Sequence record: PQ464595.1
Length of the DNA: 64,000 nucleotides
Strand: one strand, 5' to 3'
Below are positions 17,285 to 61,296 of the stretch, in pieces. Below the pieces are notes generated by a model. That model was not told where the DNA came from. It did no database searches and worked only from the letters and a program-made list of their open reading frames with translations. The position numbers and the translations under genes were made by a program. Position 1 is the first letter of the stretch. The number at the start of each line of letters is the position of its first letter.

Positions 17285-17328
17285 AGACGGATCTTGCCAC
17301 CCTCTAGGGTCGCCCATTTCGCTGGTGT
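17285..17328 (-). ncRNA. two-hairpin small RNA motif, copy J
   Basis: CCA-GCGAAA-TGG, ACCC-TAGA-GGGT, GGCAAGATCCGTCT; convergent with copy I. Confidence 0.7.
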
Positions 17329-17499
17329 GTGGATATAGTACTATAAATCGGCCAGGGATGTCAAATTTATTTTTATTAAAAAAAGTACTTGCATCCGTCG
17401 CTCAGTGTGATAATATAGCTCTGTCAACACGAAAAGACAGCTACTGATTCTGCCTGGTATTAACCAGACGCGGAAGGGGAGCTAATGGAAAAAAGCCAG

Positions 17500-17690
17500 A
17501 AAAAACCGTTTAGCCGTCTAAACGTCTAGCCACCTAGACGGATAGCCATCTAGCCTTTTAGCCGTCCAGAAGGATAGCCGTCTATACGTCTATACATCCA
17601 GCTATCTACACTTCCAGAAGTCTATCCATCTTCTGACAGCAGACGGGATAACTCCGTCTATCGAATACCTATACAGTACTATAATTGTAT
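17500..17690. repeat. cluster of short TAGCC/GTCTA iterons
   Basis: TAGCCGTCTA, AACGTCTAGCC, TAGACGGATAGCC, GGATAGCCGTCTA and similar units in a non-coding tract. Confidence 0.6.
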
Positions 17691-18602
17691 CTATAGGACT
17701 CTCTCAATTAAAATTTAACAGTACTGGCACTATACTCTCTAGGGTAATATCTACCGTACAAAAATATAATACCAGTACTGTCGAAGTGCATCAAGTGCTA
17801 CTCAAATACGCTTAGTACTCAATTTCCTAAGCAACGCAAGAAAGGAGGAAAAACTATGAACACGAGGGTTCAAGTCACCAAGCAGTCTACACCACAGGGC
17901 TAGGCTTCAGTACTGGTACGTGTTAAGCACCTCCTGAACCATGTGTGTATATTACCCTATCCCCAGCCTGGACGCAAGGACTTTTCGCAGCTATTTTCAT
18001 TATTCTTCTAGTACTGTACAAGTATCCAGTACTGTACATATACACATGGGTGCTAGAGGTTCGAACATTAGTTACAACATCTTGTTCTATATTCTTTCGG
18101 GGATAGTCTAGTACTGAAATGATTTCTAGCACTATTGAGATTTAGGCTGGAGGTTCAAAGGTACTTCAAAATTTCTAGGATCGGGATTTAGGATAGAGTA
18201 CTTTCCAGATTTTAGCTGAAGTGAGTTCTGGATTTTTCAGTACTGAGATTTTCGTTCGACTTCAGGAACAGATATAGCGGAAGGGGGTTGACAGTACTGA
18301 ACGGTGTATGCTAGGGTATTTCGCACGGTACTGTACGTATCTTCAGTACTGATAACTTATACATAATGTGTATTTTCACAGTACTGTATATTAATACATA
18401 GAATATCGCGAACGCTATTTTGGCCTGTTTGAATCCTTTCGATATCGCTCATGCGTATCTACAGGAATCAAACTAATGGATTGTAGAGCGTTCTATGAGG
18501 TTCTAGGGGGTATATTAGTACTATCTATGATGTTCTTTACTAGGTCGTTGTTTTCCTTATATGGGTAAATACGTATAAGATTTTTATATAAGGAGAGAAA
18601 GT

Positions 18603-19775
18603 ATGTTACCATTTCCACAATTAGTAGTATACGGAAATTCTACAACTCCGATACTGTCTATTAAAAAGTTTGCGACGGGTGCTGCTAATACCGGATTATT
18701 ATATAGTAATGGTGAATTATACATGGGAGGTATAAATTCTAATTATCAGTTAGGATTAGGTACTAACACGACCATGAATGGAACACATAATTTAAGCTTA
18801 ACAGGAGTTGATACTTTTTACATACATTATTATGCTACGATAGCGATAATGAATAATGGTACTATAATGTTTGTGGGAAGGAATGCTAATTTCTTTGGCA
18901 CAGGTGGTAATAGTACAGTATGGATTGATTGCACATCATATTTCAGTTCTAAAGGTTTAACTACTGGAAGTATTTCAGATATACAGATGGGCAATAATGG
19001 TACGGTAGTACTTGACACATCGGGTAATATGTATGGTATAGGAACTAATCAGTACGGGGAGTTTGGTAGAGGTAATTCTACGGCATTAACATCTTTAACA
19101 TTACTTGACACATCTGTACAGAAGATTAGTTATGTAGCTGATTCGTTATATTATTTGAAGGGTAATAATTTATATAGGGCTGGAAGAAATACTAGTGGAG
19201 AATTAGGTGATTCTAGTACTACTAACAAGAATACGTTTTCGGTTTTAACTGGCACGAATTTTAATGGTTTAATAATTGACGTTAAGGGTGGAACTAACAC
19301 CTGTATGATATTAGCAAATCCAGCTACTGGTTTAAGATATTACTATACTGGTTCAAGAGCTTATGGAGTACAGGGGAATGGAGTTGATGCGGCGGCGATA
19401 TCGACATTTACGAATCAATCATCAATGAACAATAAGATTACTGCGTTAACTACTAACACATCTGGAACATCGAATTACATATCACATGTATATGCTACTG
19501 ATGGGATATATGGATGTGGATATGATAATGGTGGAGCGGTAGGTACTGCTGGAGTTGGAAGGAGTGGTTCACCGGTTCGAATATTATCATGGACATTATG
19601 TGCGGGGATACCGAGTACTGACTTAAGTACTATAAAGTTTTTTAGTTCATTTGATGGTATTAATGCTACATTTTTTTCATACAATGATAGTTTATATGCT
19701 TGTGGATTATCGGCCTTTACCGGATTGCCGAGTAATACAACTTCATTTACAAAATTAACAAACACACCATATTAA
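18603..19775 (+). CDS. MLPFP-family protein 1, RCC1/BLIP-II-like beta-propeller; putative virion or adhesin protein
   Basis: Repeats such as G.N.YGEFG.G and AG.N.SGELG. Confidence 0.8.
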   Translation: MLPFPQLVVYGNSTTPILSIKKFATGAANTGLLYSNGELYMGGINSNYQLGLGTNTTMNGTHNLSLTGVDTFYIHYYATIAIMNNGTIMFVGRNANFFGTGGNSTVWIDCTSYFSSKGLTTGSISDIQMGNNGTVVLDTSGNMYGIGTNQYGEFGRGNSTALTSLTLLDTSVQKISYVADSLYYLKGNNLYRAGRNTSGELGDSSTTNKNTFSVLTGTNFNGLIIDVKGGTNTCMILANPATGLRYYYTGSRAYGVQGNGVDAAAISTFTNQSSMNNKITALTTNTSGTSNYISHVYATDGIYGCGYDNGGAVGTAGVGRSGSPVRILSWTLCAGIPSTDLSTIKFFSSFDGINATFFSYNDSLYACGLSAFTGLPSNTTSFTKLTNTPY

Positions 19776-19787
19776 GGAGAAAGAGGA

Positions 19788-21812
19788 ATGTTACCATTTC
19801 CAATATTAAACTATTACGGGAATAATATAGTACCTCCTGTTAAGTTAATTAAGAGATTTTCAATATCATCTAATGGTTCAGGAGTACTATTACATTACAC
19901 TAATGGTGATTTATATGCTTTAGGAACAAACACTTCTGGTAAGTTTGGTACAGGTGATACTACTGCTATCACGGGTGCTTGGAGATTAATAGCAAGTAAT
20001 GTACGTAAGTACGTATGTTCTCATAACTTTACTATAGTAATACACAATGATGGTACTGTACTGTACAGTGGTAATGTGGGTGGTATATTCACATCGGCAT
20101 TAGGGTATTCATTTCCTAACAGTACTGTCTTTGCGGATATGACTTCGGCGTTTAGTACATTTGATATATCTGGCATTAAGTCCTTAGAGGCATGTGAGGA
20201 TTCGGGCACTAGATTCTGGTTAATAGACAAGGATAATGTTCTATGGTGTATAGGTTCAAATCAGTACTACGCACTAGGTTCATCATCATCGTTAGCGACT
20301 GTTAACTGGACACAGGCGGTGAATGGTACTAATGTTGAAAGAGTTATGCCAGGATTACAGGCGGTATGGATTAAGAAGTTAGACGGTACTTACTGGAGAG
20401 CTGGGACCAATGCTTATGGAACATTAATGGGTTCAAATAGTACGGCGACAAATACTACATTTACTATGCAGAATACATATACTGGAACATCAGATGCGAG
20501 TACTATAGTGAACTTAACTATGTCTCAATACAACATGTATCTATTAATGAAGGATGGTACAGTACGAATATATGGTAATAAGGGTGCAGGGCAGGTTGGT
20601 GATGGAACAACAACTGGTACAGCCTTTTCGCCATTCAATCCTAGTCTTACCGGAATAACTAAGATACAAGATAGTACTGGTTCGTTTTACAGTTCATACT
20701 TGGTTGGTCCGAATGGATTATTAGTTTCGGGTCAGGGTACAAACAACATGTTTGGTTTAGGTACTGGAGCATCGCCTACTACATTCACATTATCCAATAC
20801 AGGTGTAATTACCAATTTAGATTATGCTAATTTAGATTACGTTAATTTTGTCACCTCGAACGCGGGATATGTGGTTGTTGGAGATGAAGTATATGCGGCG
20901 GGGAATACTACTTATACATTAGGTGCTGCGGCATATAATACATGGACATTGATGAACACGCCATTGAGTACACATTGGGGTACTGCTGGATTAGTTAGTA
21001 CTGTTACAAATACGAGTACTACATCACCGACAATGACTAGGTACAGTCATAGTAGATGTTCATACGGGGATGATAAGTTCATTATCTATGGTGGATACAA
21101 TGGTAGTACTATTTTCAATGACATTAACATATATGATGGTACAACAGGAACATGGAGTACTGTACCGGTGACGGCGAGTACACAGGCGAGATTTGGTTCA
21201 GGAATTTGTACTATTGGAGATACTATGTATGTCTTTTGTGGTAACAGTACTACATCGACTGCGACAAACACGGTATACTCGGTGGATTTGATTACAGGCG
21301 AGTGGACGTTACTTACAACAACTGGAACACCTACTGCGAGATCGCATGTAAGAGCTTGTACTATAGGAAATATGATATACTTATGGGGTGGTGAGAGTGT
21401 ATCCACGTGGTATTCATTTAATCCTAATACTAATGTGTTTACGTCTATGACGAGTTCACCACTTACTGCGACTATTGATTCGGATATGGTTACTGATGGA
21501 AAGGACATATACATTAACAATAATACTGCTGGATTTTACAAGTACAGTTTCAAGACTAACAGTTGGGTGACATTATCGAACAAGAACAGTGCTGCGATGA
21601 AGATGGCATACAGTAACGGATACATTTATTGTACTATGGCTGGCAATACATTTATGTTCGCATATAAGGTAAGTACTAACATCTGGACGCAATTACCTAA
21701 TCCTTCATTGATTAGTACTAGTCGTCAGTGTTTAGCATCGGCGGCGGGTAAGGTAGTATATACTGGCGGTATAGCTAGTACTAACAGTAATAACTGTTTT
21801 ACAATAACATAA
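19788..21812 (+). CDS. MLPFP-family protein 2, RCC1-like plus Kelch beta-propeller
   Basis: RCC1-like repeats followed by Kelch repeats (IIYGGYNG...YD, YVFCG, YLWGG). Confidence 0.82.
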   Translation: MLPFPILNYYGNNIVPPVKLIKRFSISSNGSGVLLHYTNGDLYALGTNTSGKFGTGDTTAITGAWRLIASNVRKYVCSHNFTIVIHNDGTVLYSGNVGGIFTSALGYSFPNSTVFADMTSAFSTFDISGIKSLEACEDSGTRFWLIDKDNVLWCIGSNQYYALGSSSSLATVNWTQAVNGTNVERVMPGLQAVWIKKLDGTYWRAGTNAYGTLMGSNSTATNTTFTMQNTYTGTSDASTIVNLTMSQYNMYLLMKDGTVRIYGNKGAGQVGDGTTTGTAFSPFNPSLTGITKIQDSTGSFYSSYLVGPNGLLVSGQGTNNMFGLGTGASPTTFTLSNTGVITNLDYANLDYVNFVTSNAGYVVVGDEVYAAGNTTYTLGAAAYNTWTLMNTPLSTHWGTAGLVSTVTNTSTTSPTMTRYSHSRCSYGDDKFIIYGGYNGSTIFNDINIYDGTTGTWSTVPVTASTQARFGSGICTIGDTMYVFCGNSTTSTATNTVYSVDLITGEWTLLTTTGTPTARSHVRACTIGNMIYLWGGESVSTWYSFNPNTNVFTSMTSSPLTATIDSDMVTDGKDIYINNNTAGFYKYSFKTNSWVTLSNKNSAAMKMAYSNGYIYCTMAGNTFMFAYKVSTNIWTQLPNPSLISTSRQCLASAAGKVVYTGGIASTNSNNCFTIT

Positions 21813-21821
21813 GGAGAGAAT

Positions 21822-22973
21822 ATGTTACCATTTCCAATATTATTAGAATACGGAAATTCTGTACAAGCTCCACCAACTATAGAAGCATTATATGAAGTTA
21901 GTCCAGGGACGTACTTACTGTATAGTACTGGAGAATTATTTTATAGAGGTAGAAATACGGGTGGAAAATCTGGTATAGGTACTGGTATAAAAAATGATCA
22001 ATGGTATGCTAGTAATACTAATGTACAGATGATTAATTTTGGTGATGGGCCAGGTTTTCTAATGAAAACCGATGGTTCTTACTGGATTACTGCTTCATCT
22101 AACGTGTTAGGAATATCTGGTTATGTAAGTTCTACATGGTCAGATTGTACATCAAAGGTTACTGCCTTTGCTGCACCAGGTGAAATTAAAGCTATTAGTG
22201 GTACTAGTGGTGGTATAGTCATATTAAAAACAGATGGTACTATTTGGGTAGCAGGTTCAAACACTAACGGTCAATTAGGGTTAGGTGCAACGAGTAGTAC
22301 TCAAACATTTACGCAGGTTGCGTCAGATGCGATTTCAATATATTGTTCTCCACAGAATATATTTTATATTAATTCAAGTAATCAATTATTTGGTACAGGT
22401 TATAATAACTTAGGTCAATTAGGCGATGGCACAGTAAATTCAAGTACTACATTTAAGCAATTAACATCTGGTTCGTTATCTACATATCCATATGTACATT
22501 CGGTATCTGGTATTAGTTCCAATACTATATTAATGTGTAGTGCTACTTCAACATCGGAAAAGGTATTATTAGCATGTGGTTCAGGAAGTAATATAGGATT
22601 AACTACTGGAACATCACAACAAAATTCATTTGTTTTAGTTCCATCAATGAGTTCTAGTACTGCTAGAGTGATAAAGTTAAGTCCTTCGATGGGTTCTGCG
22701 TCGAACATGTTTGTATTAACAACGGATGGATTATATTTCATAGGTAATAGTCAATACAATCAGAGTGGTATAGGAAGTACTGGACAAACATTATATACTA
22801 AGGTTACTACATTACCTGATAGTATAGATAATGTTCAAAACATTTCATATTTTGGTTCAAGTTCTGAGGGTTCAGCAATTCATTATAATAATAAAGTTTA
22901 CAGTACTGGTGCTGCTGGAGCATGGGGTTCAGGAAGTTCCACATGGGTATTAAGAACAGACACACCATATTAA
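21822..22973 (+). CDS. MLPFP-family protein 3, RCC1-like beta-propeller
   Basis: AGSNTNGQLGLG and TGYNNLGQLGDG repeats. Confidence 0.82.
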   Translation: MLPFPILLEYGNSVQAPPTIEALYEVSPGTYLLYSTGELFYRGRNTGGKSGIGTGIKNDQWYASNTNVQMINFGDGPGFLMKTDGSYWITASSNVLGISGYVSSTWSDCTSKVTAFAAPGEIKAISGTSGGIVILKTDGTIWVAGSNTNGQLGLGATSSTQTFTQVASDAISIYCSPQNIFYINSSNQLFGTGYNNLGQLGDGTVNSSTTFKQLTSGSLSTYPYVHSVSGISSNTILMCSATSTSEKVLLACGSGSNIGLTTGTSQQNSFVLVPSMSSSTARVIKLSPSMGSASNMFVLTTDGLYFIGNSQYNQSGIGSTGQTLYTKVTTLPDSIDNVQNISYFGSSSEGSAIHYNNKVYSTGAAGAWGSGSSTWVLRTDTPY

Positions 22974-22985
22974 GGAGAAAAAGGA

Positions 22986-24140
22986 ATGTTACCATTTCCA
23001 ATAATAAATCAGTACGGGAATACTGTACTTAAAAATCAAATAAAGAAAGTAGTGGGTTCAGGTAGAGTTGCTGGATTATTATATAATAATGGAAATTTAT
23101 ACATGAGAGGTTCAAACCAGTATACTAATTTTGGTATAGCTGGTGCATCTGATTATAAAAATTGGGTACTAGTGCATACTAATGTAAAAGAGGTATGGTT
23201 AAATAATTATCACACAGTGATACAGACATATGATGATCAATTCTTATGTGCTGGATATGGAAGGGCAATAGGATATGGTGGAACGAATTATTTGTGGATG
23301 GTGTATGATAGATTATACACATTAACATCTACACCAGCAAGTACTGTTCAGCAAATATGTTTGAATCAATATGGTACATTTGTATTATTGAATACTAATA
23401 ATTTATATGCTTTAGGATTTAACGCAGCTTACTGTTTAGGTGTTGGTGCGTTGAACAGTATTAGTACTGCGTTCACATTAACACGATCCGCGACTAAGTA
23501 CATTCATAGTAATATCAATGGCACTTTTGCTATAGGAACTAATAATTTACTATATGCACGTGGTTCAGCGTCGAACTTTAGGATGGGTAATAACAGTAAT
23601 ACTGACATGTCATCTTGGACTCAGATAACATTACCTACTGGATACACGTATCCAATTTTAGCGTTTGAGGGTTATATACATACATTAATATATGCTGCGT
23701 CAGATAGTTCTTTAAGTAGTACTGCGATATTATATTGTGGTTATACCTCGACCAACCCAGGCGGTGCTATTCCACCATATGGTTCTAACTATACTCCTAT
23801 TTTTAGAGTTGGGGCTGGTGGTACAAATAATTCATTTTCATCATTTGGTACTGGATATCAAGATACAGGCCATAAATCATTTTATACTGATTTTGGTAGT
23901 ACAAATTTATATTCTGCGGGAACTGCGGGACCAAGTTTAGGATCAGCTACTAATAAAAGTTCTGGATTTACTATTATGCCATTACCAAGTACTGGAATAA
24001 CTTCATTTTGTACTGTTGGCACGACTGATACAGTAGGTGCAACATTTGCTGTACATAATAATTTATTGTATGCGTGTGGAGATAGCACATGGTTAGATGC
24101 TACCACATACAATTTTGTTTTACAATCTGTACCAGAATAA
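22986..24140 (+). CDS. MLPFP-family protein 4, RCC1-like beta-propeller
   Basis: RGSNQY.NFG and LGFNAAYCLGVG repeats. Confidence 0.8.
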   Translation: MLPFPIINQYGNTVLKNQIKKVVGSGRVAGLLYNNGNLYMRGSNQYTNFGIAGASDYKNWVLVHTNVKEVWLNNYHTVIQTYDDQFLCAGYGRAIGYGGTNYLWMVYDRLYTLTSTPASTVQQICLNQYGTFVLLNTNNLYALGFNAAYCLGVGALNSISTAFTLTRSATKYIHSNINGTFAIGTNNLLYARGSASNFRMGNNSNTDMSSWTQITLPTGYTYPILAFEGYIHTLIYAASDSSLSSTAILYCGYTSTNPGGAIPPYGSNYTPIFRVGAGGTNNSFSSFGTGYQDTGHKSFYTDFGSTNLYSAGTAGPSLGSATNKSSGFTIMPLPSTGITSFCTVGTTDTVGATFAVHNNLLYACGDSTWLDATTYNFVLQSVPE

Positions 24141-24152
24141 GGAGAAAAAATT

Positions 24153-24662
24153 ATGTTACCATTTCCAATAATGAATCAATATGGAAATATCATTGTACGT
24201 GATGATTATGAGAGGTTTATCCTGGAGTTAACATCTAGCAGTACTAATAAGTTAGTGACGTACAATCAATCTTATAGTCTACTAAATGCGTCAGGAGCTT
24301 ATGATAGAGTTTATATGTATGGTACGTCTTCTGTATCAGGAACTATGTGGGGAACACCTTATGGGAATAAAATGACATGGGATAGTACTTTTTGTAGAGT
24401 TATACAACATGCTTTCCCAACTCAAGATTTATATAATGATTTTATAGCAAATGGTTCTAATAGAGTAGTTTGTTTTGTACGTTCTCCTATTACTTCTATG
24501 TCAAATTACATTTCATTAACTAGAAATGGATATACTAGTTCAACATATTCTACATTTAGTGGGTGCACTATAACACAGTTTATATATTATGATAATAATT
24601 CTGGCAGAGTTATGACATATGATCCTAGTACTATTAGTACTCCAACATTTTATTATCCATAA
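24153..24662 (+). CDS. MLPFP-family protein 5, unrelated small C-terminal domain
   Basis: Shared N-terminal peptide, GGAG RBS. Confidence 0.75.
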   Translation: MLPFPIMNQYGNIIVRDDYERFILELTSSSTNKLVTYNQSYSLLNASGAYDRVYMYGTSSVSGTMWGTPYGNKMTWDSTFCRVIQHAFPTQDLYNDFIANGSNRVVCFVRSPITSMSNYISLTRNGYTSSTYSTFSGCTITQFIYYDNNSGRVMTYDPSTISTPTFYYP

Positions 24663-24671
24663 GGAGGATAT

Positions 24672-25841
24672 ATGTTACCATTTCCACAATTAGTTCAGTA
24701 CGGGAATATAGCACCACAACCCTTACCGATTAAAAAATTACTTACTCACAATAATTCTGTATTTGTTCTTATGTTCTCTGGTCAATTATATGTCAGAGGA
24801 TTTAATACATCGGGCCAATTAGGAGTAGGTAGTACTACAAACGTAACCACCTGGACATTAAGTACTACAAGTGTAGATGATTTATGGGTTGGTGGTACTT
24901 CTACATTAATACGAAAATATGATGGCTCTTATATGTTCGCAGGTAATAATACTGGTGTTGGTAATGCCAACGGTACTAGTACAACGACATGGGCAGCGTG
25001 GACAGTGAAAGATACATTAACTTTAGGTATTATAGATATTGCTCTCAGTACTGGTTCTATTAGCGTATTACTAGAAGATGGTACTATTAAATCAGCAGGC
25101 ATTGGTTCTAACGGTCAATTAGGAAATAACACAACAACAAATAATATAGTTAGTTCATTTGTTAATAGTATTATTCCTGTTGGTGTTACGCCAGTTTCAT
25201 TATTAGCTTCCAATACGATGCATGGTTTTATTGGTGATAATAACAGATTATATCATACTGGTACAATTAATGCGGCAAATACAGTGAGTCCTGGCACAGC
25301 ACAATATACAACATATACATTAAATCCAGTAATAGGTAGTACTAATGCAGTACTTAGCTACATGAACAACTCAAACGGTTTAGCTATGGGTTTAATAAGA
25401 ACGTCAGGAAATGTTGTAAGAATGTACTTTGGTGGCTCTCAAATATTTGGTCAAATGGCTGATGGTGTTAACGGTAGTTTATCAAATTTAAAAGCATTTG
25501 GTGATTTTACTGGTACTCCATATCCATCTGGAACAATTCTTGATATAGCTACAGGATATTCATATTATGCTCAAATGGTTATTACCAGTACTGGTATATT
25601 TGCTGCTGGTCGAAACACAGGTTCTCAGGCTGGAGCATTAAGTACTGGTATTGCGTCGGAGGCATTAACATATACATCGTGTGTATTACCTTCTGGATTT
25701 GATACTACCAACGCTAAGGTTTCTATGTGTCAGGGAAGAACATATTTAACAGATGGCAATTTCATTTATAGTTCAGGTACATTAACAACTTATGGTGGCC
25801 CAAGTACTACTACATTTATTTTAGATGACCCAAGATATTAA
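24672..25841 (+). CDS. MLPFP-family protein 6, RCC1-like beta-propeller
   Basis: RGFNTSGQLGVG and AGIGSNGQLG repeats. Confidence 0.82.
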   Translation: MLPFPQLVQYGNIAPQPLPIKKLLTHNNSVFVLMFSGQLYVRGFNTSGQLGVGSTTNVTTWTLSTTSVDDLWVGGTSTLIRKYDGSYMFAGNNTGVGNANGTSTTTWAAWTVKDTLTLGIIDIALSTGSISVLLEDGTIKSAGIGSNGQLGNNTTTNNIVSSFVNSIIPVGVTPVSLLASNTMHGFIGDNNRLYHTGTINAANTVSPGTAQYTTYTLNPVIGSTNAVLSYMNNSNGLAMGLIRTSGNVVRMYFGGSQIFGQMADGVNGSLSNLKAFGDFTGTPYPSGTILDIATGYSYYAQMVITSTGIFAAGRNTGSQAGALSTGIASEALTYTSCVLPSGFDTTNAKVSMCQGRTYLTDGNFIYSSGTLTTYGGPSTTTFILDDPRY

Positions 25842-25850
25842 GGAGTAATT

Positions 25851-26468
25851 ATGTTACCATTTCCACGAATGCTACAGTACGGCAATACAGTACTGAATAT
25901 ACCGAAATATGAATATACATTTTCAAATAGCACATCTGTAAGTTCTGGATTATTATCTGGAACAGTTAGTGGTGGTTCATATATTTCAGTTCCCGTAAGT
26001 GGTTATACTACTGGTATAGGTGGTGCGACATTAACATTTCCCAGTGCTTTATCTATTGGTACTGGTGATTATTACATGGAGGCCGAATATTACAATAACA
26101 ACAACGTTGTTGGATATAGTATTATCTCCACTTTTAATCAGAATACTGGATTCAGGTACGGTGATGGTGGATATGGAAACCGTATACAGTACGCAGGTAA
26201 TGCAGGAAATCAGGCATTACAGTATGCGGTTCCTAACACACGAAGCAGTACATATCAACAAGTACTTAAGCTTAGATGGGAGCGTAAGTCTGGAATATCT
26301 AAGTTTTACGTAAATGGGGTACAGACTAATTTTGCGATAGGAACTAGTACTACGTACAGTAATTCTGAGATTCAGGACACAATGGATTTTGCCACATTGA
26401 CGCCATTAACTTCTTTAAATTTAGGAAGTACAGGTATGGCATTAATTAATTTAAAATTAAATTTTTAG
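25851..26468 (+). CDS. MLPFP-family protein 7, LamG/lectin-like beta-sandwich (tentative)
   Basis: IGTGDYYMEAEYY...LRWERKSGISKFYVNG resembles a ConA/LamG-type sandwich. Confidence 0.65.
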   Translation: MLPFPRMLQYGNTVLNIPKYEYTFSNSTSVSSGLLSGTVSGGSYISVPVSGYTTGIGGATLTFPSALSIGTGDYYMEAEYYNNNNVVGYSIISTFNQNTGFRYGDGGYGNRIQYAGNAGNQALQYAVPNTRSSTYQQVLKLRWERKSGISKFYVNGVQTNFAIGTSTTYSNSEIQDTMDFATLTPLTSLNLGSTGMALINLKLNF

Positions 26469-26477
26469 GAGAAGAAT

Positions 26478-27116
26478 ATGTTACCATTTCCACGATTATT
26501 AACATATGGAGTTCAGCCGGGTCCAATATATAAAGTAGATCATAATTTTAGTACTAATACAAGTACTGGATCATTAACATCTGTATGGTCTGGTGGTTCA
26601 TATGGAACAATACCAGCAGTCCCAACTAACACATATGGTTATACCCAAGGTGCTACTTCTGGAACATTAACAGTGTCTAGCGGATTTAATATAGGAACTT
26701 CTGATTGTTTTATTGAATGTATATTTTATGTTAATTCAAACTCTAGTACGTTAAATCAGTCATTTCTTAGTTTTGGTGGTCCATATCCTAGTACATCATT
26801 TACTGGAATGCAATACGGTGATTCAGGGCAGAAATATAGATTATCAGCATTTTTAGGTTTAGGTTCAGATGGTAATAAAGTTCACTGTTTAGACAGAACT
26901 GCCAATACTGATTATCAAAATGTATTAAGATTTAGATTAGAAAGAAAATCGGGAATAGAGAAATTATACTTAAACGGAATTCAACAGAATTTTGCTCAAG
27001 GTGGTAGTACTACATATATTCAGAGTATAGCTAATAGTGTCAGTATATCTAATCAAACTTCAATATCGGTAGGTGGTGCTAATTTATATCTAGCACGTTT
27101 AATAATAAATTACTAG
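26478..27116 (+). CDS. MLPFP-family protein 8, paralog of protein 7
   Basis: IGTSDCFIEC...FRLERKSGIEKLYLNG. Confidence 0.65.
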   Translation: MLPFPRLLTYGVQPGPIYKVDHNFSTNTSTGSLTSVWSGGSYGTIPAVPTNTYGYTQGATSGTLTVSSGFNIGTSDCFIECIFYVNSNSSTLNQSFLSFGGPYPSTSFTGMQYGDSGQKYRLSAFLGLGSDGNKVHCLDRTANTDYQNVLRFRLERKSGIEKLYLNGIQQNFAQGGSTTYIQSIANSVSISNQTSISVGGANLYLARLIINY

Positions 27117-27138
27117 GAGAAAATAATATGGCAAATAA

Positions 27139-27170
27139 CAAAAAAAACCCGCTCAAGGCGGGTTTTTTTG
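27139..27170. terminator. bidirectional intrinsic terminator
   Basis: A-run-CCCGC-TCAAG-GCGGG-T7 between convergent genes. Confidence 0.85.
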
Positions 27171-27695
27171 TTATTTGACTGATGGAAGCGACTCAACCAA
27201 CTCGACATAACGTTTGAAAGCTGCGTTGATCATTGAGTCGTTATATCCAACTTCGCAGTACTCATTACGACGCAGGCTGATTAACTGCCCTTCCGTATAT
27301 CCAGTATTGTTAGAGGCATAAAACTTTTCGAATGGTTCAAACAGATTAATCATTCGCATATCTTTATGCTGATTATCAGTGCGATACGGCTGATAGAACT
27401 CATGCTTAATTGATTCAGTATGAGTTATTTTTACAATCTGTAGCTTGTACTTCAATACGATTTCTTTCTTTTCGTCATGAAGTTCTTTGAGCTTAGATTG
27501 TGCTTCTTCAATGGTATTGAATGACAACGGTGATTGCCATTCACGGTCGCGTTCACTGAGGCTTACGAACCGATAACCGCCCATTGTATCGAACAGAACA
27601 GTACTAGCATCATTATCTTTGCTGATATAGAATGATGTACGTACACATTCTGGAAACTTATTAGTACTGATGATATGCATTTTCATATTACCCAC
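27171..27695 (-). CDS. hypothetical protein
   Basis: 174-aa ORF. Confidence 0.7.
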   Translation of the reverse strand: MGNMKMHIISTNKFPECVRTSFYISKDNDASTVLFDTMGGYRFVSLSERDREWQSPLSFNTIEEAQSKLKELHDEKKEIVLKYKLQIVKITHTESIKHEFYQPYRTDNQHKDMRMINLFEPFEKFYASNNTGYTEGQLISLRRNEYCEVGYNDSMINAAFKRYVELVESLPSVK

Positions 27696-28353
27696 CGAAG
27701 CTACGTGAACCAGAAGAATGAGAACTGAAAGAACTTGAGCTATGCGATGATGAACTCATTTTACTTACAGTACCACCAAATCCACCACGTGTTGTTGTGG
27801 TAGTTGTCGCTGCTTTAGGTGCGAGTGAACTTTTAGGAACACTAGCAGTACCTTTAGAAGTAAAGGAACCGAATGAAGTACCTTTACTATCTACGAACTT
27901 ACCGTACATCGGAGAGTTATAACTCCGAGAACTGTACAGTGGTTGGCTTGGATAGTTCGCATGTGATGAACTATAGCCTGACATTAACGGGAACCACATA
28001 AAGGAACTATGAGAACCGTTAGTAGTACTGACATTGTTCGCAGTACTTTGCTGCGAGTTACATTGTCCAATACCGAATTCATCTTCACAGTCTTTCTGAG
28101 AAGAATACTTAGGTGCGACTTTCGCATTTTGAGATAATGCGTTCTGGTAATCCAGAGCACATTGATCCTTTGCGGCCTGATTAGCAGCACTACTTTCACA
28201 GTCCTGGATAGTTTTGTACACTGAAACACTTTCAGCGTCATCACAACCAGTAAGGAACATAGAGCCACCAACAGCAATGAACAGAGCACTATATTTCCAG
28301 AAGGTATGTACTTTGCGAAAACGAGAATAGTTCATTACTTTAGTACGTTTCAT
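27688..28353 (-). CDS. DUF1190 (YgiB/YjfM-like) lipoprotein
   Basis: LTGC lipobox, YKTIQDC...APKY...DCEDEFG..QC, PLMSGY, SQPLY, RGGFG, SFGG C-terminus. Confidence 0.88.
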   Translation of the reverse strand: MKRTKVMNYSRFRKVHTFWKYSALFIAVGGSMFLTGCDDAESVSVYKTIQDCESSAANQAAKDQCALDYQNALSQNAKVAPKYSSQKDCEDEFGIGQCNSQQSTANNVSTTNGSHSSFMWFPLMSGYSSSHANYPSQPLYSSRSYNSPMYGKFVDSKGTSFGSFTSKGTASVPKSSLAPKAATTTTTTRGGFGGTVSKMSSSSHSSSSFSSHSSGSRSFGG

Positions 28354-28933: not shown

Positions 28934-29332
28934 TTACTCAGAGTCCGTCAAGGACTTTTTACGGGCTTTTTCTTCGCGGCGAGCGATGCTAGTATTGCGT
29001 AATTTGGTCAATCCTTTAATCAGTATTGCGAAGCCTACCATAAACACAATGAATGCGATTACCAGAACGCCAAATAAGTTCGCCATGAGGCCGAAGAATA
29101 CTGGATCAAATGGAATAGTCATTAATTTACAGAAGCAACCAATTACAGTTAGCAGTACCAATGGACCAGATGATTCAATTGGTACATAACGACCATAGAA
29201 ATCAAAAAGTTTATTCATTGCGTCACTGACTTTATCAAAACCGAATGACCAATCAACAACGAACAACACAAATACACCAATCCAGAACCACTGATATACA
29301 TCAGCAATGTTTACAAGAATAGGGTTAATCAT
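28934..29332 (-). CDS. membrane protein
   Basis: Three hydrophobic segments. Confidence 0.7.
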   Translation of the reverse strand: MINPILVNIADVYQWFWIGVFVLFVVDWSFGFDKVSDAMNKLFDFYGRYVPIESSGPLVLLTVIGCFCKLMTIPFDPVFFGLMANLFGVLVIAFIVFMVGFAILIKGLTKLRNTSIARREEKARKKSLTDSE

Positions 29333-29682
29333 TAGTTCTTACCTCGTTTTTCAAGACACCAATCCCTGATACATGATAGGAATGACAGGAATAAAATTAT
29401 AGCAACAATCAGTACTACTACACATAGCCACAGTGTCCAGATAGCATAGAAGAATGCTACTGGTGGAGCTACAGCACCCCATAGTACGAATGGGATAGTC
29501 AAGACTACTGACACTACTATATGTGTGATACAAACACCTACAGCATCATCAGTATCAAAGAATGTTTCTTCCAAGAAGTCATATAGATCAGTTCCTAGAG
29601 TCCACAGTACTAACACGATGCCAGCCATTACCATAATGATATATGACGGCACAGGTGCGTAAGTCATAAAGAAGTTGTACAT
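29332..29682 (-). CDS. 3-TM paralog family member
   Basis: GTDLY motif, C-terminal WCLEKRGK. Confidence 0.75.
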   Translation of the reverse strand: MYNFFMTYAPVPSYIIMVMAGIVLVLWTLGTDLYDFLEETFFDTDDAVGVCITHIVVSVVLTIPFVLWGAVAPPVAFFYAIWTLWLCVVVLIVAIILFLSFLSCIRDWCLEKRGKN

Positions 29683-30026
29683 TAGATTTTACCTCGCTTT
29701 TCTAAGCACCAAATGTTGAATGAATGTAGTACATTCGTTACTAAGCGAACACCATACACAAACAGTAATAGTGAACACCAGATGTTCCACGCAGCCCAAC
29801 CATAGATGATATATTCAGTGAAGATAAAGCCAAAGGCGTTAATCACTAATGACCACCAGAAGTACACTTTCATGAAGTCCAGTGAGTTCCACCATAACTT
29901 CTTGAAACGATCATACCAGTCTGTACCGAACAGCCACATCATGTATACTAACAGTGTCAGTACTACATAGATTGCTGATGGTACATAAATGTATGGTTCT
30001 ACGAATAACCAAATATTATGAATCAT
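29682..30026 (-). CDS. 3-TM paralog family member
   Basis: GTDWY motif, WCLEKRGK. Confidence 0.75.
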   Translation of the reverse strand: MIHNIWLFVEPYIYVPSAIYVVLTLLVYMMWLFGTDWYDRFKKLWWNSLDFMKVYFWWSLVINAFGFIFTEYIIYGWAAWNIWCSLLLFVYGVRLVTNVLHSFNIWCLEKRGKI

Positions 30027-30358
30027 ACACGTCCTCGTTTATTTGCGAAGTACTGACGAAGATCAATAATCTTATTACATACAAATACTGCTACAACGAT
30101 AAAAATTAAACAACATATGTATGAAAAGTTTACGTATGGAGCATTGCCAATACCATTGAATGATAGACCAATAACAATCGAGGCAATACTGATTGCTAAT
30201 GAGAACATCATGTGCATGAATAATGGTAAACCATCTTGATAGTCATTAAGTTTATAATAATAGTCAGCACAGGTTAACCAACCAATACCAATTACTATCA
30301 ATGACGATACATTCATGAACAGGCAGATAAGTTCTAGTACTTCAAAGAAGTTTGTCAT
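30023..30358 (-). CDS. 3-TM paralog family member
   Basis: ADYYYKL, YFANKRGR. Confidence 0.75.
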   Translation of the reverse strand: MTNFFEVLELICLFMNVSSLIVIGIGWLTCADYYYKLNDYQDGLPLFMHMMFSLAISIASIVIGLSFNGIGNAPYVNFSYICCLIFIVVAVFVCNKIIDLRQYFANKRGRV

Positions 30359-30406
30359 TTCGTTATCTCGGTTAACAAAGAACTCCCTTGCGGGAGTTCT
30401 TATAGA

Positions 30407-31186
30407 TTATTTTACTTCTTCCAGGTACTGACTACGCTCGTAGATCCAGTCCATGTAGTGAAGCAGATGGCTACGCTTACGCAGCGTTGGATTGGTGCGG
30501 ATTTCGTGAATCGCTTCATCCCAAGTAATGGTTGTGCGGTTCAGTTCAGTCAGAACATCACGACAGTAACGTTGACCAGCATCACATGCTCCAGCACGGT
30601 TTAACGCACGAGCACTGATAGTACGGTTCTTGAAGTCACGCCCGATTTTACGGAATTCTTCAGTAGTCAGGTAACGGAGGTTACGAGTAACATCGGTTCG
30701 TGACTTCAGTACTGCCAGCCCTTCATCAGTAAACATGAAGTGACGGATCGCAGGATTGCGAGAACTGATCAGAATTTCGTTGAATTCACGCCAATCCAGC
30801 AATTTGATAGCATCCAGTACTGGAATGGAATCTTGCGTACAGGCGATTTGTGAACCGAAACGACGAGCATTGCGGTTGTTGCTCAGGATTTCGTTAATCA
30901 CATGGTACGGCATTTGAACAGTATCAAGTACGTTCCAGCCATCCTGATAGTACGCATTTTCCAGGATTTCAAGCCACTGTTCAGTATTCAGATTAGTTGG
31001 CGTAGCACGGTTGTTTTTGATCAGCGATTTGATGATCGGTTTTGACATTTTGAACAGGTAAGTGTTCAGGATCTCAGTGTCTACACCTTCAAGATCACAG
31101 ATACGAATGGATTTCCATTGTACGTGCGGCAGCAATGCTTTGTCCAGAGTCTGAAGTGTTGCGTCTTCAATTTGAAGTTTAATCAT
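30407..31186 (-). CDS. helical-repeat protein with C-terminal C..G...W.E domain
   Basis: LNRAGACDAG...ITWDEA. Confidence 0.75.
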   Translation of the reverse strand: MIKLQIEDATLQTLDKALLPHVQWKSIRICDLEGVDTEILNTYLFKMSKPIIKSLIKNNRATPTNLNTEQWLEILENAYYQDGWNVLDTVQMPYHVINEILSNNRNARRFGSQIACTQDSIPVLDAIKLLDWREFNEILISSRNPAIRHFMFTDEGLAVLKSRTDVTRNLRYLTTEEFRKIGRDFKNRTISARALNRAGACDAGQRYCRDVLTELNRTTITWDEAIHEIRTNPTLRKRSHLLHYMDWIYERSQYLEEVK

Positions 31187-31213
31187 TTTTCACTACCCTT
31201 ACGAAGTTAAAGT

Positions 31214-31552
31214 TTAACGACCACGTTTAGACCAGAAATATTTCCTGGATTGTTCGAACCATTCAAACAGATTAGCACCGATAAACAGTACTAATACTAT
31301 CATGTTTACTGTACCTACAATACCAAATGAAAAGTTGTGTGTCCATTCAGCACTGCGAGTTTGTGTGACTGAAGCCAATACCTGAATAAAGCACCAGAAG
31401 AACCACACAATCGCATTACAGACTGCTAGTATTCCGACGAAATCTTGATTCAGTTTAAAGTAATAGTTAGCACCTGTCCAGTACCCTACTAGGGCAACAA
31501 TCAAGAATGCTAGTACTACGAATGACAGTACTACACAGATTTCAATGAACAT
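31214..31552 (-). CDS. 3-TM paralog family member
   Basis: ANYYFKL, YFWSKRGR. Confidence 0.75.
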   Translation of the reverse strand: MFIEICVVLSFVVLAFLIVALVGYWTGANYYFKLNQDFVGILAVCNAIVWFFWCFIQVLASVTQTRSAEWTHNFSFGIVGTVNMIVLVLFIGANLFEWFEQSRKYFWSKRGR

Positions 31553-31890
31553 TATAGTTTACCCCGCTTTTTGCCGAAGTATTCTTTCAGTTCACAGAAC
31601 CCATAATATAATCCAAATCCAATACCTATTGCGTATATGAATAGGGATAAACCAGTGCACCAGCCTAAGCCATAACGAAAGCCTTTGTAAATGCTTTGTT
31701 CGACTAAAGCCACCAACATAAAGTTCGCCAAGAAACAACCAGCTTGAACGCCGATGATCATGTTAAACATTTGCCGCGTGTCGTGTGCCAGTTTAGTATA
31801 ATAGTCGGCGTATGTCAAGTTCCCGACAAAATAAATTAGTGTGATTCCAATCCACAAAATGAAATTAAGTGGGGCTAACAGATCATACAT
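31552..31890 (-). CDS. 3-TM paralog family member
   Basis: ADYYTKL, YFGKKRGK. Confidence 0.75.
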   Translation of the reverse strand: MYDLLAPLNFILWIGITLIYFVGNLTYADYYTKLAHDTRQMFNMIIGVQAGCFLANFMLVALVEQSIYKGFRYGLGWCTGLSLFIYAIGIGFGLYYGFCELKEYFGKKRGKL

Positions 31891-31892
31891 AG

Positions 31893-32225
31893 TTACACCT
31901 TATTCCGCTTACGTCCGAAGTACTGACGAATGCCACCAGAATGACGCACGAACAGTACTACAGCACCGATTGATAGTATCCATGAACATAGGCAACTAAT
32001 GCCAGTGTACATATCCCAGGGACTTACTTTTTTAACAGCATCTGGCAACGCAGCAGCGAATATCACAAAGGATATTAACGCTGTTACTATTGAAAGGATT
32101 TTGTAATCCATCATGAATTCATCTGAGAACTTGTCATAGTAATCAGCATATGTCAAGTAACCAACGTACAGTACTACGAGGGATACGAGCCATAGATTTG
32201 TCACAATTAAACCATAGACTTCCAT
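31893..32225 (-). CDS. 3-TM paralog family member
   Basis: ADYYDKF, YFGRKRNK. Confidence 0.75.
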   Translation of the reverse strand: MEVYGLIVTNLWLVSLVVLYVGYLTYADYYDKFSDEFMMDYKILSIVTALISFVIFAAALPDAVKKVSPWDMYTGISCLCSWILSIGAVVLFVRHSGGIRQYFGRKRNKV

Positions 32226-59765: not shown

Positions 59766-59837
59766 TATCATGAAGATGGTCAAGCGTGTTGACCCCTGGC
59801 AGCAGCCAGCCGTAAGTCGTACTTTTCAATCTTCTAG

Positions 59838-59910
59838 TGGAGCTATGCGGATTTGAACCGCAGACCTACTACGTGCAAGGCAGTTGCTCTACCAACTGAG
59901 CTATAGCCCC
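59838..59910 (-). tRNA. tRNA-Ala(TGC)
   Basis: Cloverleaf GGGGCTA/TAGCTCC, anticodon loop CT-TGC-AC. Confidence 0.95.
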
Positions 59911-59991
59911 TTATCACGTCCTTACTTATACCGAGTCGGCTTTCGGGCAGACGTGATACACCCCGAAGCACATTGGCTTTGTATAAGTTTG

Positions 59992-60064
59992 ATGCGGGAG
60001 AGGGATTTGAACCCCCGACCTCCAGGTTATGAGCCTGGCAAGCTGACCGCTGCTCTACCCCGCA
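59992..60064 (-). tRNA. tRNA-Met(CAT), initiator-like
   Basis: TGCGGGG..AGCAG, anticodon arm CCAGG-CTCATAA-CCTGG. Confidence 0.9.
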
Positions 60065-60201
60065 TTTCCTATGTGATTATTATACCACATTTTTTTGAGC
60101 CGTTCCAATTTTTTTCAACATTTTTCAATTTCAGAATCAAGCGGCTATCTCTCAATTCATGCTAACATTATACCAGAATTTTTCTAGTCGTTCCAACTTT
60201 T

Positions 60202-60396
60202 TTACAACGCTAAGAAAAAACTTAACGCGGGTAAACCAATGAACAGTACGATTAAACCTAACCAAAATAACGTGTAGTATTTCAGTTTGAATTTTTTAGT
60301 ACCGTATTGCGGGGCAGCAATGCCAAAGTTAATGAAGAACAACAACCCTACTACCCAACAGATTACGCTGAACAGTACTGCTACAGTGATGTACAT
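60202..60396 (-). CDS. small membrane protein
   Basis: GGAG RBS before MYITVAV; two TMs. Confidence 0.6.
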   Translation of the reverse strand: MYITVAVLFSVICWVVGLLFFINFGIAAPQYGTKKFKLKYYTLFWLGLIVLFIGLPALSFFLAL

Positions 60397-60416
60397 TGTA
60401 CCATCTCCATCATTAG

Positions 60417-60489
60417 TGGTCAATACTGGATTCGAACCAGTGACAGCGACATTATGAGTATCGTGCTCTACCAACTGAGCTAATTGACC
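60417..60489 (-). tRNA. tRNA with CAT anticodon (elongator Met or Ile2)
   Basis: GGTCAAT/ATTGACC acceptor, CGATA-CTCATAA-TGTCG. Confidence 0.9.
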
Positions 60490-60683
60490 CTTGGATAATT
60501 TTGTACGTTGTGAGCTAGTGCTTTGATCTCACAACGTGCTTTGTTGATATTACTAACAGCACGATTTTGGTACTCATTAGTAACTGGTTGTACTGAGCTA
60601 TCAACAATTATATACTGCTGTAGCTCATGTTGTAAAGCCATTAATTCACTCTCAATCTGTACTAACCGTTCAGTACTGAGCAT
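60480..60683 (-). CDS. hypothetical coiled-coil protein
   Basis: GAGG RBS before MLSTERL. Confidence 0.6.
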   Translation of the reverse strand: MLSTERLVQIESELMALQHELQQYIIVDSSVQPVTNEYQNRAVSNINKARCEIKALAHNVQNYPRVN

Positions 60684-60757
60684 GATTTTATCCTCTCGCT
60701 TAAAACGTGTAAGCATTATTACACGTTGCCTCGCACTCGTCAAGGACTTTTTTAAGA

Positions 60758-60834
60758 TGGTGGGCTTTCAGGGATTCGAACCCTGGACCGTCACTTTAAG
60801 AGAGTGCTACTCTAACCTACTGAGTTAAAAGCCC
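60758..60834 (-). tRNA. tRNA-Lys(CTT)
   Basis: GGGCTTT/AAAGCCC-A-CCA, loop CT-CTT-AA. Confidence 0.93.
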
Positions 60835-61187
60835 ATATCCTTAACTGCTCTCGTTAAAATGTAATTGAAGCGACAGCAATCATAAAACGTTAGACCGAAC
60901 CTTTCTTCCTTCACTATATCACGATATTCTACGATGCTTAGTTTATCTTTTCCTGAATCATCTAAGTTCAGTAGTAGACCAAAATCAACAACGCATACTA
61001 GAATGTGAAGATCACCTTCATCATCATAATATCCAAGTCGTAGTAATGGTACTGGTGCATCTTCTGCGAAGTACATAACGTATGTAGTGCCGTTATAATC
61101 AATAGTACCATCTTCATAACGTAAGAAATGATGATAGTTAGTATCGAAGAACTTCGCTATATCCTTTAGTGAGTTAAGTTCGTTCAT
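60825..61187 (-). CDS. hypothetical protein
   Basis: AAGGA RBS before MNELNSL. Confidence 0.65.
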   Translation of the reverse strand: MNELNSLKDIAKFFDTNYHHFLRYEDGTIDYNGTTYVMYFAEDAPVPLLRLGYYDDEGDLHILVCVVDFGLLLNLDDSGKDKLSIVEYRDIVKEERFGLTFYDCCRFNYILTRAVKDMGF

Positions 61188-61219
61188 ATATATTTCCTTA
61201 TATATACAGTTCATTTTAG

Positions 61220-61296
61220 AGCGTGGAGAGGGATTTGAACCCCCGATTTTACGGATTTGCAATCCGTTCCAATTGACCAGACTCTGGCATCCACGC
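61220..61296 (-). tRNA. tRNA-Cys(GCA)
   Basis: GCGTGGA/TCCACGC-T, ACGGA-TTGCAAA-TCCGT. Confidence 0.93.

Follow-up and report, generated by a model that had tools for sequence, protein, structure and literature searches.

The internal proteins IPI, IPII, and IPIII of phage T4 have only one feature in common, a peptide of ~10 residues at the extreme N terminus, the capsid-targeting signal (CTS), which directs them into the particle. Receptor-binding proteins (RBPs), among them T7-type fibers, the tailspikes of CBA120 and G7C, and the branched fibers of RaK2 and phiKp24, carry a conserved N-terminal anchor that holds interchangeable C-terminal modules, binding or enzymatic, on the virion; several different modules are present per particle, mosaic boundaries fall at the junction of anchor and head, and the anchors are folded domains of ~100 to 300 residues, usually trimers. 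Here we describe an array of eight genes, g1 to g8, in the first 64,000 bases (the window; PQ464595.1, 100% identity) of Erwinia phage Kaldavass, the products of which share a 12-residue N-terminal peptide, here called the tag, and diverge beyond it into heads of different folds. On balance, and with a little better than even confidence, we take the shared peptide to be a common virion address of accessory proteins, probably external ones, and its coding sequence to be a seam at which the genes are shuffled.

The array resembles each of these systems in part. Like the CTS, the tag is a short N-terminal peptide on unrelated virion proteins; the T4 loci, too, are highly variable between related phages, and the Kaldavass lineage is T4-related. 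The T4 signal, however, ends in a prohead-protease site (Leu/Ile-x-Glu) and is removed, whereas the array tag has no conserved Glu and is retained, and T4 cargo is small, charged, and internal, whereas that of the array consists of uncharged propellers and lectin-like folds of 169 to 674 amino acids (aa). As in the RBP anchor systems, a conserved N terminus is followed by interchangeable C-terminal modules, but the common part is 12 residues long and predicted to be unstructured, on folds of a monomer type, with the heads predicted to start at about residue 15 to 20. Decoration proteins with immunoglobulin-like or lectin-like folds, such as T4 Hoc, are similar in being dispensable-looking surface modules thought to give weak adherence; Hoc differs in that such proteins are encoded by single genes and bound to the capsid by a folded domain, with no multigene array and no common peptide tag. 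The CdiA-CT/Rhs orphan-module arrays consist of tandem variable modules, each behind a short conserved stretch used for swapping; they encode toxins and are mostly silent until recombined onto the main gene. Each cassette of the Kaldavass array, in contrast, has its own Shine-Dalgarno (SD) sequence and start codon, and the heads give no hint of toxicity.

Eight tandem genes with a common start

Kaldavass, a Rak2-like jumbo myovirus of Erwinia aphidicola with a genome of 366,556 bp, has Xanthomonas phage XbC2 and Pectobacterium phage CBB as close relatives. Eight consecutive open reading frames (ORFs) on the plus strand, at 18603-27116, form the tandem array. The 15-mer ATGTTACCATTTCCA occurs exactly eight times in the window, at 18603, 19788, 21822, 22986, 24153, 24672, 25851, and 26478, each copy being the start of one array ORF; shuffled sequence gave 0.25 matches, even with two mismatches permitted. 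All eight proteins open with MLPFP, four variable residues, and YG, which continues as YGN in seven of them and as YGV in g8. Spacing between the genes is 9 to 12 nucleotides (nt), and the SD sequence, AGGAG or GGAG, overlaps or abuts the preceding stop codon. An initial annotation of this DNA had claimed eight tandem plus-strand genes with an identical 15-nt start, the same N-terminal pattern, and ribosome-binding sites right behind the previous stop, all of which were borne out. The genes are as follows.

18603-19775, plus strand: g1, tag (18603-18638) and RCC1-like beta-propeller, 390 aa (Pfam, PHROG, PDB)
19788-21812, plus strand: g2, tag, RCC1-like propeller (~19788-20987), and Kelch propeller (~20997-21743), 674 aa
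21822-22973, plus strand: g3, tag and RCC1-like propeller, 383 aa (PF00415, 31 bits, and PF13540, 27 bits, above cutoff)
22986-24140, plus strand: g4, tag and RCC1-like propeller, 384 aa (PHROG 4219, E = 3e-75)
24153-24662, plus strand: g5, tag and small alpha/beta head, 169 aa (phrog_6409, E = 1e-31)
24672-25841, plus strand: g6, tag and RCC1-like propeller, 389 aa (PF00415, 26.5 bits; PF13540, 23.4; PHROG 4219, E = 1e-53)
25851-26468, plus strand: g7, tag and ConA/LamG-like jelly-roll head, 205 aa (AlphaFold2 and Foldseek)
26478-27116, plus strand: g8, tag (YGV) and ConA/LamG-like head, a paralog of g7, 212 aa

A six-frame scan of bases 1-114000 of Kaldavass with a relaxed motif revealed the tag on no further ORF. 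The part from 114 to 366 kb was checked only by a blastn census with an SD-plus-tag joint, by tblastn with the tagged CBB protein CBB_247, and at the syntenic CBB_247 site; tblastn found no match there, though a diverged tagged gene may lie in this part, and the census gave exactly eight places in the Kaldavass record.

Head domains of the array proteins

Residues 1 to 12 are all that is common to every fold class. BLASTP comparisons across fold classes aligned the first 11 to 15 residues in most pairs and at most 39, with insignificant E values, and the five RCC1-like propellers are mutually 25 to 38% identical in their best local alignments. The propeller of g1 matched PF25390 (E = 6e-23), PF00415 (25.5 bits; cutoff, 21.7), PHROG 4219 (E = 2e-54, from residue 1), and the UVR8, RPGR, HERC, and RCC1 chains in the PDB. 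That of g2 matched PHROG 4219 (E = 1e-51, over residues 1 to 409) and PF25390 (E = 6e-19) and that of g4 matched PF25390 (E = 4e-13), both staying below the RCC1 repeat cutoffs. The Kelch propeller of g2 (residues 405 to 652) matched PF24681 over residues 407 to 557 (138 bits; cutoff, 50) and phrog_12615 over residues 404 to 652, and Kelch_1, 2, 3, 4, and 6 each scored above their own cutoff in the C-terminal half. The DNA of g4 is 81% identical to BF_0546 and its pEa_SNUABM orthologs, and that of g7 is 81% identical to XbC2_588.

For g7, Pfam gave no sequence-family match to ConA/LamG, and there was no significant PDB sequence match. Its AlphaFold2 (AF2) model is a beta-sandwich, with a predicted local distance difference test score (pLDDT) of 85.1 and a predicted template modeling score of 0.83, and resembles lectin-like subdomains, carbohydrate-binding modules, galectin, and ERGIC-53 in the PDB (72 matches, E ≤ 1e-3); these Foldseek matches are at the fold level only, with template modeling scores of ~0.5 and ~10% identity. 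The paralog g8 is 38% identical to g7 (E = 1e-36) and, in Pfam, matches the Sialidase N-terminal lectin domain only weakly (19.7 bits; cutoff, 26); the tagged relatives XbC2_582, XbC2_584, and CBB_551 pass Laminin_G_3. No Pfam match, PDB sequence match, or PDB fold match to its AF2 model (pLDDT, 75.5) was found for g5. Other jumbo phages encode look-alikes of this head, one of them forming the C-terminal domain of a 719-aa protein. An NCBIfam scan gave no matches. The initial annotation had called five RCC1-like propellers, one with an added Kelch propeller, two LamG-like heads, and one unrelated domain, all diverging past the shared N terminus; the Pfam, PHROG, AF2, and Foldseek results agree with these fold calls, and the BLASTP comparisons agree with the divergence.

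In composition the array proteins stand apart from nearby ORFs. Ser, Thr, Asn, Gly, and Tyr together make up ~50% of residues, versus 28% in neighboring ORFs; Lys, Arg, Asp, and Glu make up 7.8 to 11.8% (~9%) per protein, versus a mean of 22.5% nearby, and the net charge is between -3 and +3. Such a composition is typical of exposed fiber or adhesin proteins. Some relatives of these genes are annotated "DNA condensation protein," a name carried over from eukaryotic RCC1, and the authors of the phAPEC6 study propose a DNA condensation or inner-body role as a hypothesis only (PMC7247149). We rejected this annotation, since the low charge content and a net charge near zero are unlike those of DNA-associated proteins.

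In the two AF2 models made, of g5 and g7, the tag is predicted to be unstructured: pLDDT is below 50 for residues 1 to 14 of g7 and 1 to 13 of g5, and DSSP assigned no secondary structure to residues 1 to 14 of g7 and a single three-residue helical turn, at 6 to 8, to g5. A Pro-rich stretch comes directly behind the tag in many RCC1-type members.

Conservation and distribution of the tag

A census of tagged genes comprised 85 proteins from 10 genomes and revealed two flavors of the tag, the first in 62 proteins, including all eight described here, and the second, which does not occur in Kaldavass, in 23. Positions 1 to 4 are M, L, P, and F in 85/85. In the first flavor, position 5 is small, position 7 is hydrophobic, and the tag ends in Y10 (62/62), G11 (59/62), and N12 (61/62); in the second flavor, positions 6 to 8 are I, I, and S in 23/23, 22/23, and 22/23, respectively. 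Neither the second flavor nor the clade-wide spread of the tag was part of the initial annotation.

The extent of conservation at the DNA level made us consider whether the SD sequence and first codons are merely an initiation or coupling cassette and a recombination seam, the peptide itself having no role. Codons 2 to 5 are identical in all eight array genes, which has a chance of ~1.5e-6 under array codon usage if the genes are independent; across the census, codon 2 is TTA in 80 genes and 70 of the 85 have an SD that merges with the stop codon, and crossovers fall in this very stretch (see below). Tags are also more alike within a genome (0.83) than between genomes (0.75), most of all in phAPEC6 (0.93). 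Yet codon 3 is a synonymous variant in 25/85 tagged genes with residues 2 to 4 unchanged, and four codons are used for P3, two for Y10 (TAC in 43 and TAT in 19), four for G11, and two for N12. Because synonymous changes are frequent at fixed residues, selection acts on the peptide and not on the DNA alone. Conservation, moreover, reaches residue 12, well past the initiation region, and a profile of the tag recovers proteins, not just DNA, across genera. An explanation at the nucleic acid level only is, in our estimate, very improbable.

That profile, built on residues 1 to 32, yielded 25 matches at E ≤ 1e-3 among 1.84 billion representative proteins. Twenty-four of them begin at residue 1, in proteins of 29 to 688 aa; the single exceptional match does not involve the tag positions, so that the tag is internal in none of the 25. 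A full-text literature search for the letters of the tag found no phage paper.

With one SD-plus-tag joint as the query, blastn found 214 places in 62 phage records, nearly all of them jumbo phages of 310 to 386 kb, with hosts in Escherichia, Salmonella, Erwinia, Yersinia, Serratia, Cronobacter, Pectobacterium, Xanthomonas, and Klebsiella. When viral contigs were scanned for the exact pattern, it turned up almost only in those of 355 to 371 kb, with one match on a 7.9-kb contig. The tagged heads fall into at least 14 BLAST families, which include propellers, Laminin_G_3 lectin folds, glycine-rich domains, and others. Heads that are 53% and 46% identical bear different tag flavors, with homology setting in at about residue 15 to 16; the closest head to that of g3 (46% identity, 375 aa), on contig UViG_3300031414, bears the other flavor. 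Elsewhere, related heads are C-terminal domains of longer proteins, some annotated as tail fiber or virion structural proteins.

Some further observations concern individual relatives. In Erwinia phage Y3, of another "hairy" lineage, an independent tag system was not seen, neighboring genes having no common short N terminus; Y3_088 (L021, 5524-6609) has a LamG-like head akin to that of CBB_247 as the C-terminal part of an untagged 361-aa protein. The deposited linear record of GAP32 begins and ends inside the array, with gp001 and gp002 at its start and GAP32_531, lacking a start, at its end; since the record ends lie within it, the GAP32 array is split by an arbitrary numbering origin. In phAPEC6, at least two full-length tagged RCC1-type ORFs (L018, 3-1145 and 6063-7253) are not annotated in GenBank.

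Tagged proteins in the virions of relatives

CBB has ten tagged proteins, CBB_247, 536, 537, and 548 to 554. Eight of these (247, 536, 537, 548, 549, 551, 552, and 553) are in the published virion proteome, determined by mass spectrometry, with two to eight peptides each, and the tag is carried by five of the six CBB structural proteins noted by the authors to be missing from GAP32 (PMC5259590). Six RCC1-type proteins in the structural proteome of phAPEC6, gp003, 005, 006, 007, 009, and 010 (PMC7247149), are all tagged, as is gp001 of GAP32, which is structural by mass spectrometry. The supplementary peptide report for CBB lists LFEYANVIIPPNYK, LLQYGNK, and YANVIVEYATK, which cover tag residues 7 to 20, 7 to 13, and 10 to 20 of CBB_536, CBB_553, and CBB_548, respectively. 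Because these peptides reach across residues 7 to 20, the tag is present in mature particles and is not cut off like the T4 CTS. The initial annotation had proposed peptide-anchored virion heads that serve as adhesins; its claim of virion association stands for the tagged homologs in CBB, phAPEC6, and GAP32, whereas a socket for the tag, exposure on the particle surface, and a binding function are parts that we infer.

Whole-virion mass spectrometry is equally compatible with a T4-like role of the tag, as a signal that would place these proteins on the scaffolding core and thus inside the capsid, to be ejected with the DNA and to act in the host, for example by inhibiting defense enzymes. The Kaldavass group are jumbo phages distantly descended from T4-like phages, hypervariable arrays are typical of anti-defense genes, and phAPEC6 has an inner body of unknown composition, for which its authors suggested RCC1-like proteins (PMC7247149). 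A conserved protease site is absent, however: position 9 of the first flavor is Gln in 19, Glu in 16, Lys in 16, and another residue in 11 of the 62 proteins, and no protein of the second flavor has Glu there (0/23). On these counts, together with the CBB peptides from mature virions, we rejected a cleaved T4-like CTS. Cargo of the size seen here, ~9% charged, is also unlike the small charged internal proteins, the heads have the lectin-like and propeller folds of binding modules, and the related heads noted above end longer proteins, some annotated as tail fiber or virion structural proteins. We consider targeting to the capsid interior unlikely.

Persistence of the tag in mature virions bears on another possibility, that it is an assembly signal, recognized by a chaperone or modifying enzyme or acting as an oligomerizing strand, with attachment to the virion made by other surfaces. 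The tag is always at a free N terminus and appears unstructured alone in the models, the capsid appendages of phAPEC6 look trimeric or dimeric (PMC7247149), and two flavors could mean two assembly routes. A transient signal fits poorly with a tag that stays in the particle, though, and the unrelated heads have no other common surface by which to reach one site; furthermore, no candidate chaperone gene lies beside the array in any relative examined. This explanation seems to us improbable, slightly more so than targeting to the capsid interior.

Exchange of cassettes at the joint

Each array gene is preceded by a joint that runs from the SD sequence, or from the stop codon fused to it, to the end of the tag codons. 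The joints are as follows, with notes on a comparison with the 371-kb metagenomic relative L013.

18588-18638, plus strand: joint 1, SD and g1 tag codons 1-12; the homology partner with L013 changes here
19773-19823, plus strand: joint g1/g2, stop codon fused to SD, spacer, tag codons 1-12
21810-21857, plus strand: joint g2/g3; an L013 homology block ends at 21839
22971-23021, plus strand: joint g3/g4
24138-24188, plus strand: joint g4/g5; an L013 homology block begins at 24137
24660-24707, plus strand: joint g5/g6; served as the blastn query that found the 62 phage records
25839-25886, plus strand: joint g6/g7; an L013 homology block ends at 25886
26466-26513, plus strand: joint g7/g8

Across the array, Serratia phage BF is ~99% identical to Erwinia phage pEa_SNUABM_12, and three whole-gene insertions or deletions set the two apart. 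The first joins the upstream part of one gene to the body of the next, with the crossover within a 19-nt stretch that holds the 15-mer. The second is an extra Kelch-type gene between 95-nt direct repeats, which consist of intergenic sequence and tag; the third is bounded at stop codons. The 19-nt crossover and the 95-nt flanking repeat support the suggestion in the initial annotation that the 15-mer could be a recombination point. The homology blocks between Kaldavass and L013 have five ends, all located -16 to +36 nt from a start codon; since alignments are expected to extend into any shared tag, this comparison demonstrates exchange of whole cassettes and not exact crossovers. Kaldavass and XbC2, with a genome similarity of 84.6%, have only three heads in common (g2, g7, and g8), out of 8 and 11.

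ORFs that consist of the tag only also occur. One in CBB, of 10 codons, lies just upstream of CBB_554 (L005, ~17500-17560), and another, BF_0547 (L002, 2121-2219), of 32 codons, is found in both BF and pEa_SNUABM_12; both ORFs resemble the footprints that lost cassettes would leave. CBB_247 (L016, 2515-3249), a tagged LamG-like virion protein, is encoded alone in the main structural region, directly after endonuclease VII, and the corresponding site in Kaldavass (L022, 2977-2992) holds no gene, being a 14-nt gap. Cassettes can therefore insert at places other than the array.

A proposed common virion address

We suggest that the array is a set of cotranscribed, hypervariable cassettes for accessory virion proteins of Rak2-like jumbo phages. 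A cassette would comprise an SD sequence fused to the preceding stop codon, a 12-residue foldless tag that is kept in the particle, and one autonomous beta-rich domain, whether an RCC1-like or Kelch propeller, a ConA/LamG jelly roll, a glycine-rich domain, or another, of the kind used for binding. By its free N-terminal tag, each of these otherwise unrelated heads may be attached at one shared site of the particle, most likely on the exterior, on the hair-like or globule-tipped fibers of tail and capsid; one virion would then display a mixture of heads, and the two tag flavors may serve two sites. The ~45-nt SD-plus-tag joint, the only sequence common to all cassettes, would provide the homology for gain, loss, and re-tagging of heads. 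In relatives, hairs are found on tail and capsid, along with fibers with terminal globules, and the authors of the CBB study liken the hairs to accessory decoration proteins; the literature up to a 2026 review leaves the proteins of hairs and globule-tipped fibers unassigned.

In a more far-reaching form, which we offer tentatively and think somewhat more apt to fail than to hold, a 12-residue uncleaved address peptide in two orthogonal flavors would suffice to mount at least 14 head families on the particle exterior, at hair tips, fiber tips, or capsid sites, as a natural plug-and-display system with the coding sequence as its seam; this would identify the proteins of the hairs and globules.

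Several points weigh against a common external address. The virion proteomes come from relatives and not from Kaldavass, and whole-virion mass spectrometry cannot separate outside from inside. No peptide observed covers tag residues 1 to 6, and the very first residues may therefore be trimmed. Any N-terminal overhang has low pLDDT by default, and a PDB search with the tag profile found no solved structure that contains the tag. No partner protein of the tag was identified, and none was sought. The description of Kaldavass by transmission electron microscopy has globule-tipped short fibers and makes no mention of hairs. Finally, the lineage is distantly related to T4, which loads diverse proteins into its head via a short N-terminal peptide, and RCC1-like propellers can act as protein inhibitors, which would fit an anti-defense role.

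Leader, terminator, and flanking regions

Two further features delimit the array.

17450-18602, plus strand: noncoding leader between divergent transcription units (ORF scan)
27141-27169, strand not assigned: bidirectional intrinsic terminator with a stem of 13 pairs, 5 of them GC, and T runs on either strand

The terminator closes both the array and a convergent minus-strand unit. Inside the array there is no terminator-like site of comparable strength, only three 7-pair matches; with a strong terminator after g8 and none comparable within, the array reads as one operon. The region from 18000 to 28000 is a compositional island, with a GC content of 0.34 to 0.39, versus 0.40 to 0.445 in the flanks, and a positive GC skew. 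Codon usage in the array is likewise distinct, TTA accounting for 78% of Leu and TTT for 84% of Phe codons, versus 24% and 32% in neighboring genes.

Neither 17318-17922 nor 18133-18602 is covered by an ORF of at least 50 aa, and short overlapping ORFs at 17923-18132 look spurious, as do the 30- to 40-aa "hypothetical proteins" that the GenBank record places in the 17450-18560 stretch. There are no tRNA genes in the leader or array, and an Rfam scan of both gave subthreshold matches only, on the terminator. A T4-type late promoter motif was not found upstream of g1, where the only TAAATA is at 18566; the leaders of relatives, when aligned, gave no clear promoter signal. The leader segment 18345-18509 is 87 to 88% identical to XbC2 and CBB. 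Its CBB counterpart lies ~80 nt before the annotated boundary of a 22-kb terminal repeat; since it adjoins that boundary, the array probably abuts the physical genome end.

Short repeats of the TAGCCGTCT-like and GTCTAT-like kinds occur at 17500-17660. The palindrome CAGTACTG is present in 62 exact copies in the window and, with no more than one mismatch, in 213, versus 26 expected; its density is 6.7 per kb in the array leader (peak, 17400-18600) versus ~0.6 per kb in and after the array. Many copies lie directly 3' of the -10 element in sigma-70-like promoters (TTGACA, ~17-nt spacer, and TAT.CT) before minus-strand genes, and from this placement the palindrome would seem to be a start-site element conserved among early promoters.

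Shortly beyond the array, the minus strand at 28934-32225 encodes runs of ~110-aa membrane protein paralogs, and this same block, of three-transmembrane proteins, also flanks the array in CBB, GAP32, BF, and pEa_SNUABM_12. A long tRNA-rich region begins at 59837-61296, with five tRNAs in the window; about 30 more, one of them labeled a suppressor, are annotated up to 113 kb (64-114 kb), with very small ORFs between them.

Implications for jumbo phages

The principle of a shared N-terminal address has precedents in the T4 CTS and the RBP anchor domains. The combination seen here, an uncleaved 12-residue tag in two flavors, on at least 14 head families, encoded in expressed tandem cassettes, was not found in the literature and databases searched. 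Across dozens of jumbo phage genomes, the genes concerned are annotated "Kelch-like" or "hypothetical," among other labels; recognition of a common address tag brings at least 14 protein families together as one system and accounts for the grouping of five of the six CBB structural proteins that have no GAP32 counterpart, and a misleading DNA condensation annotation is removed. The question of the hairs and the RCC1-like proteins becomes a structural one, that of the pocket holding the tag peptide. The array also provides a clean natural case of short-homology cassette exchange in a virus. If our reading is true, a short peptide would be sufficient for virion incorporation, which would be of interest for the assembly of large virions.

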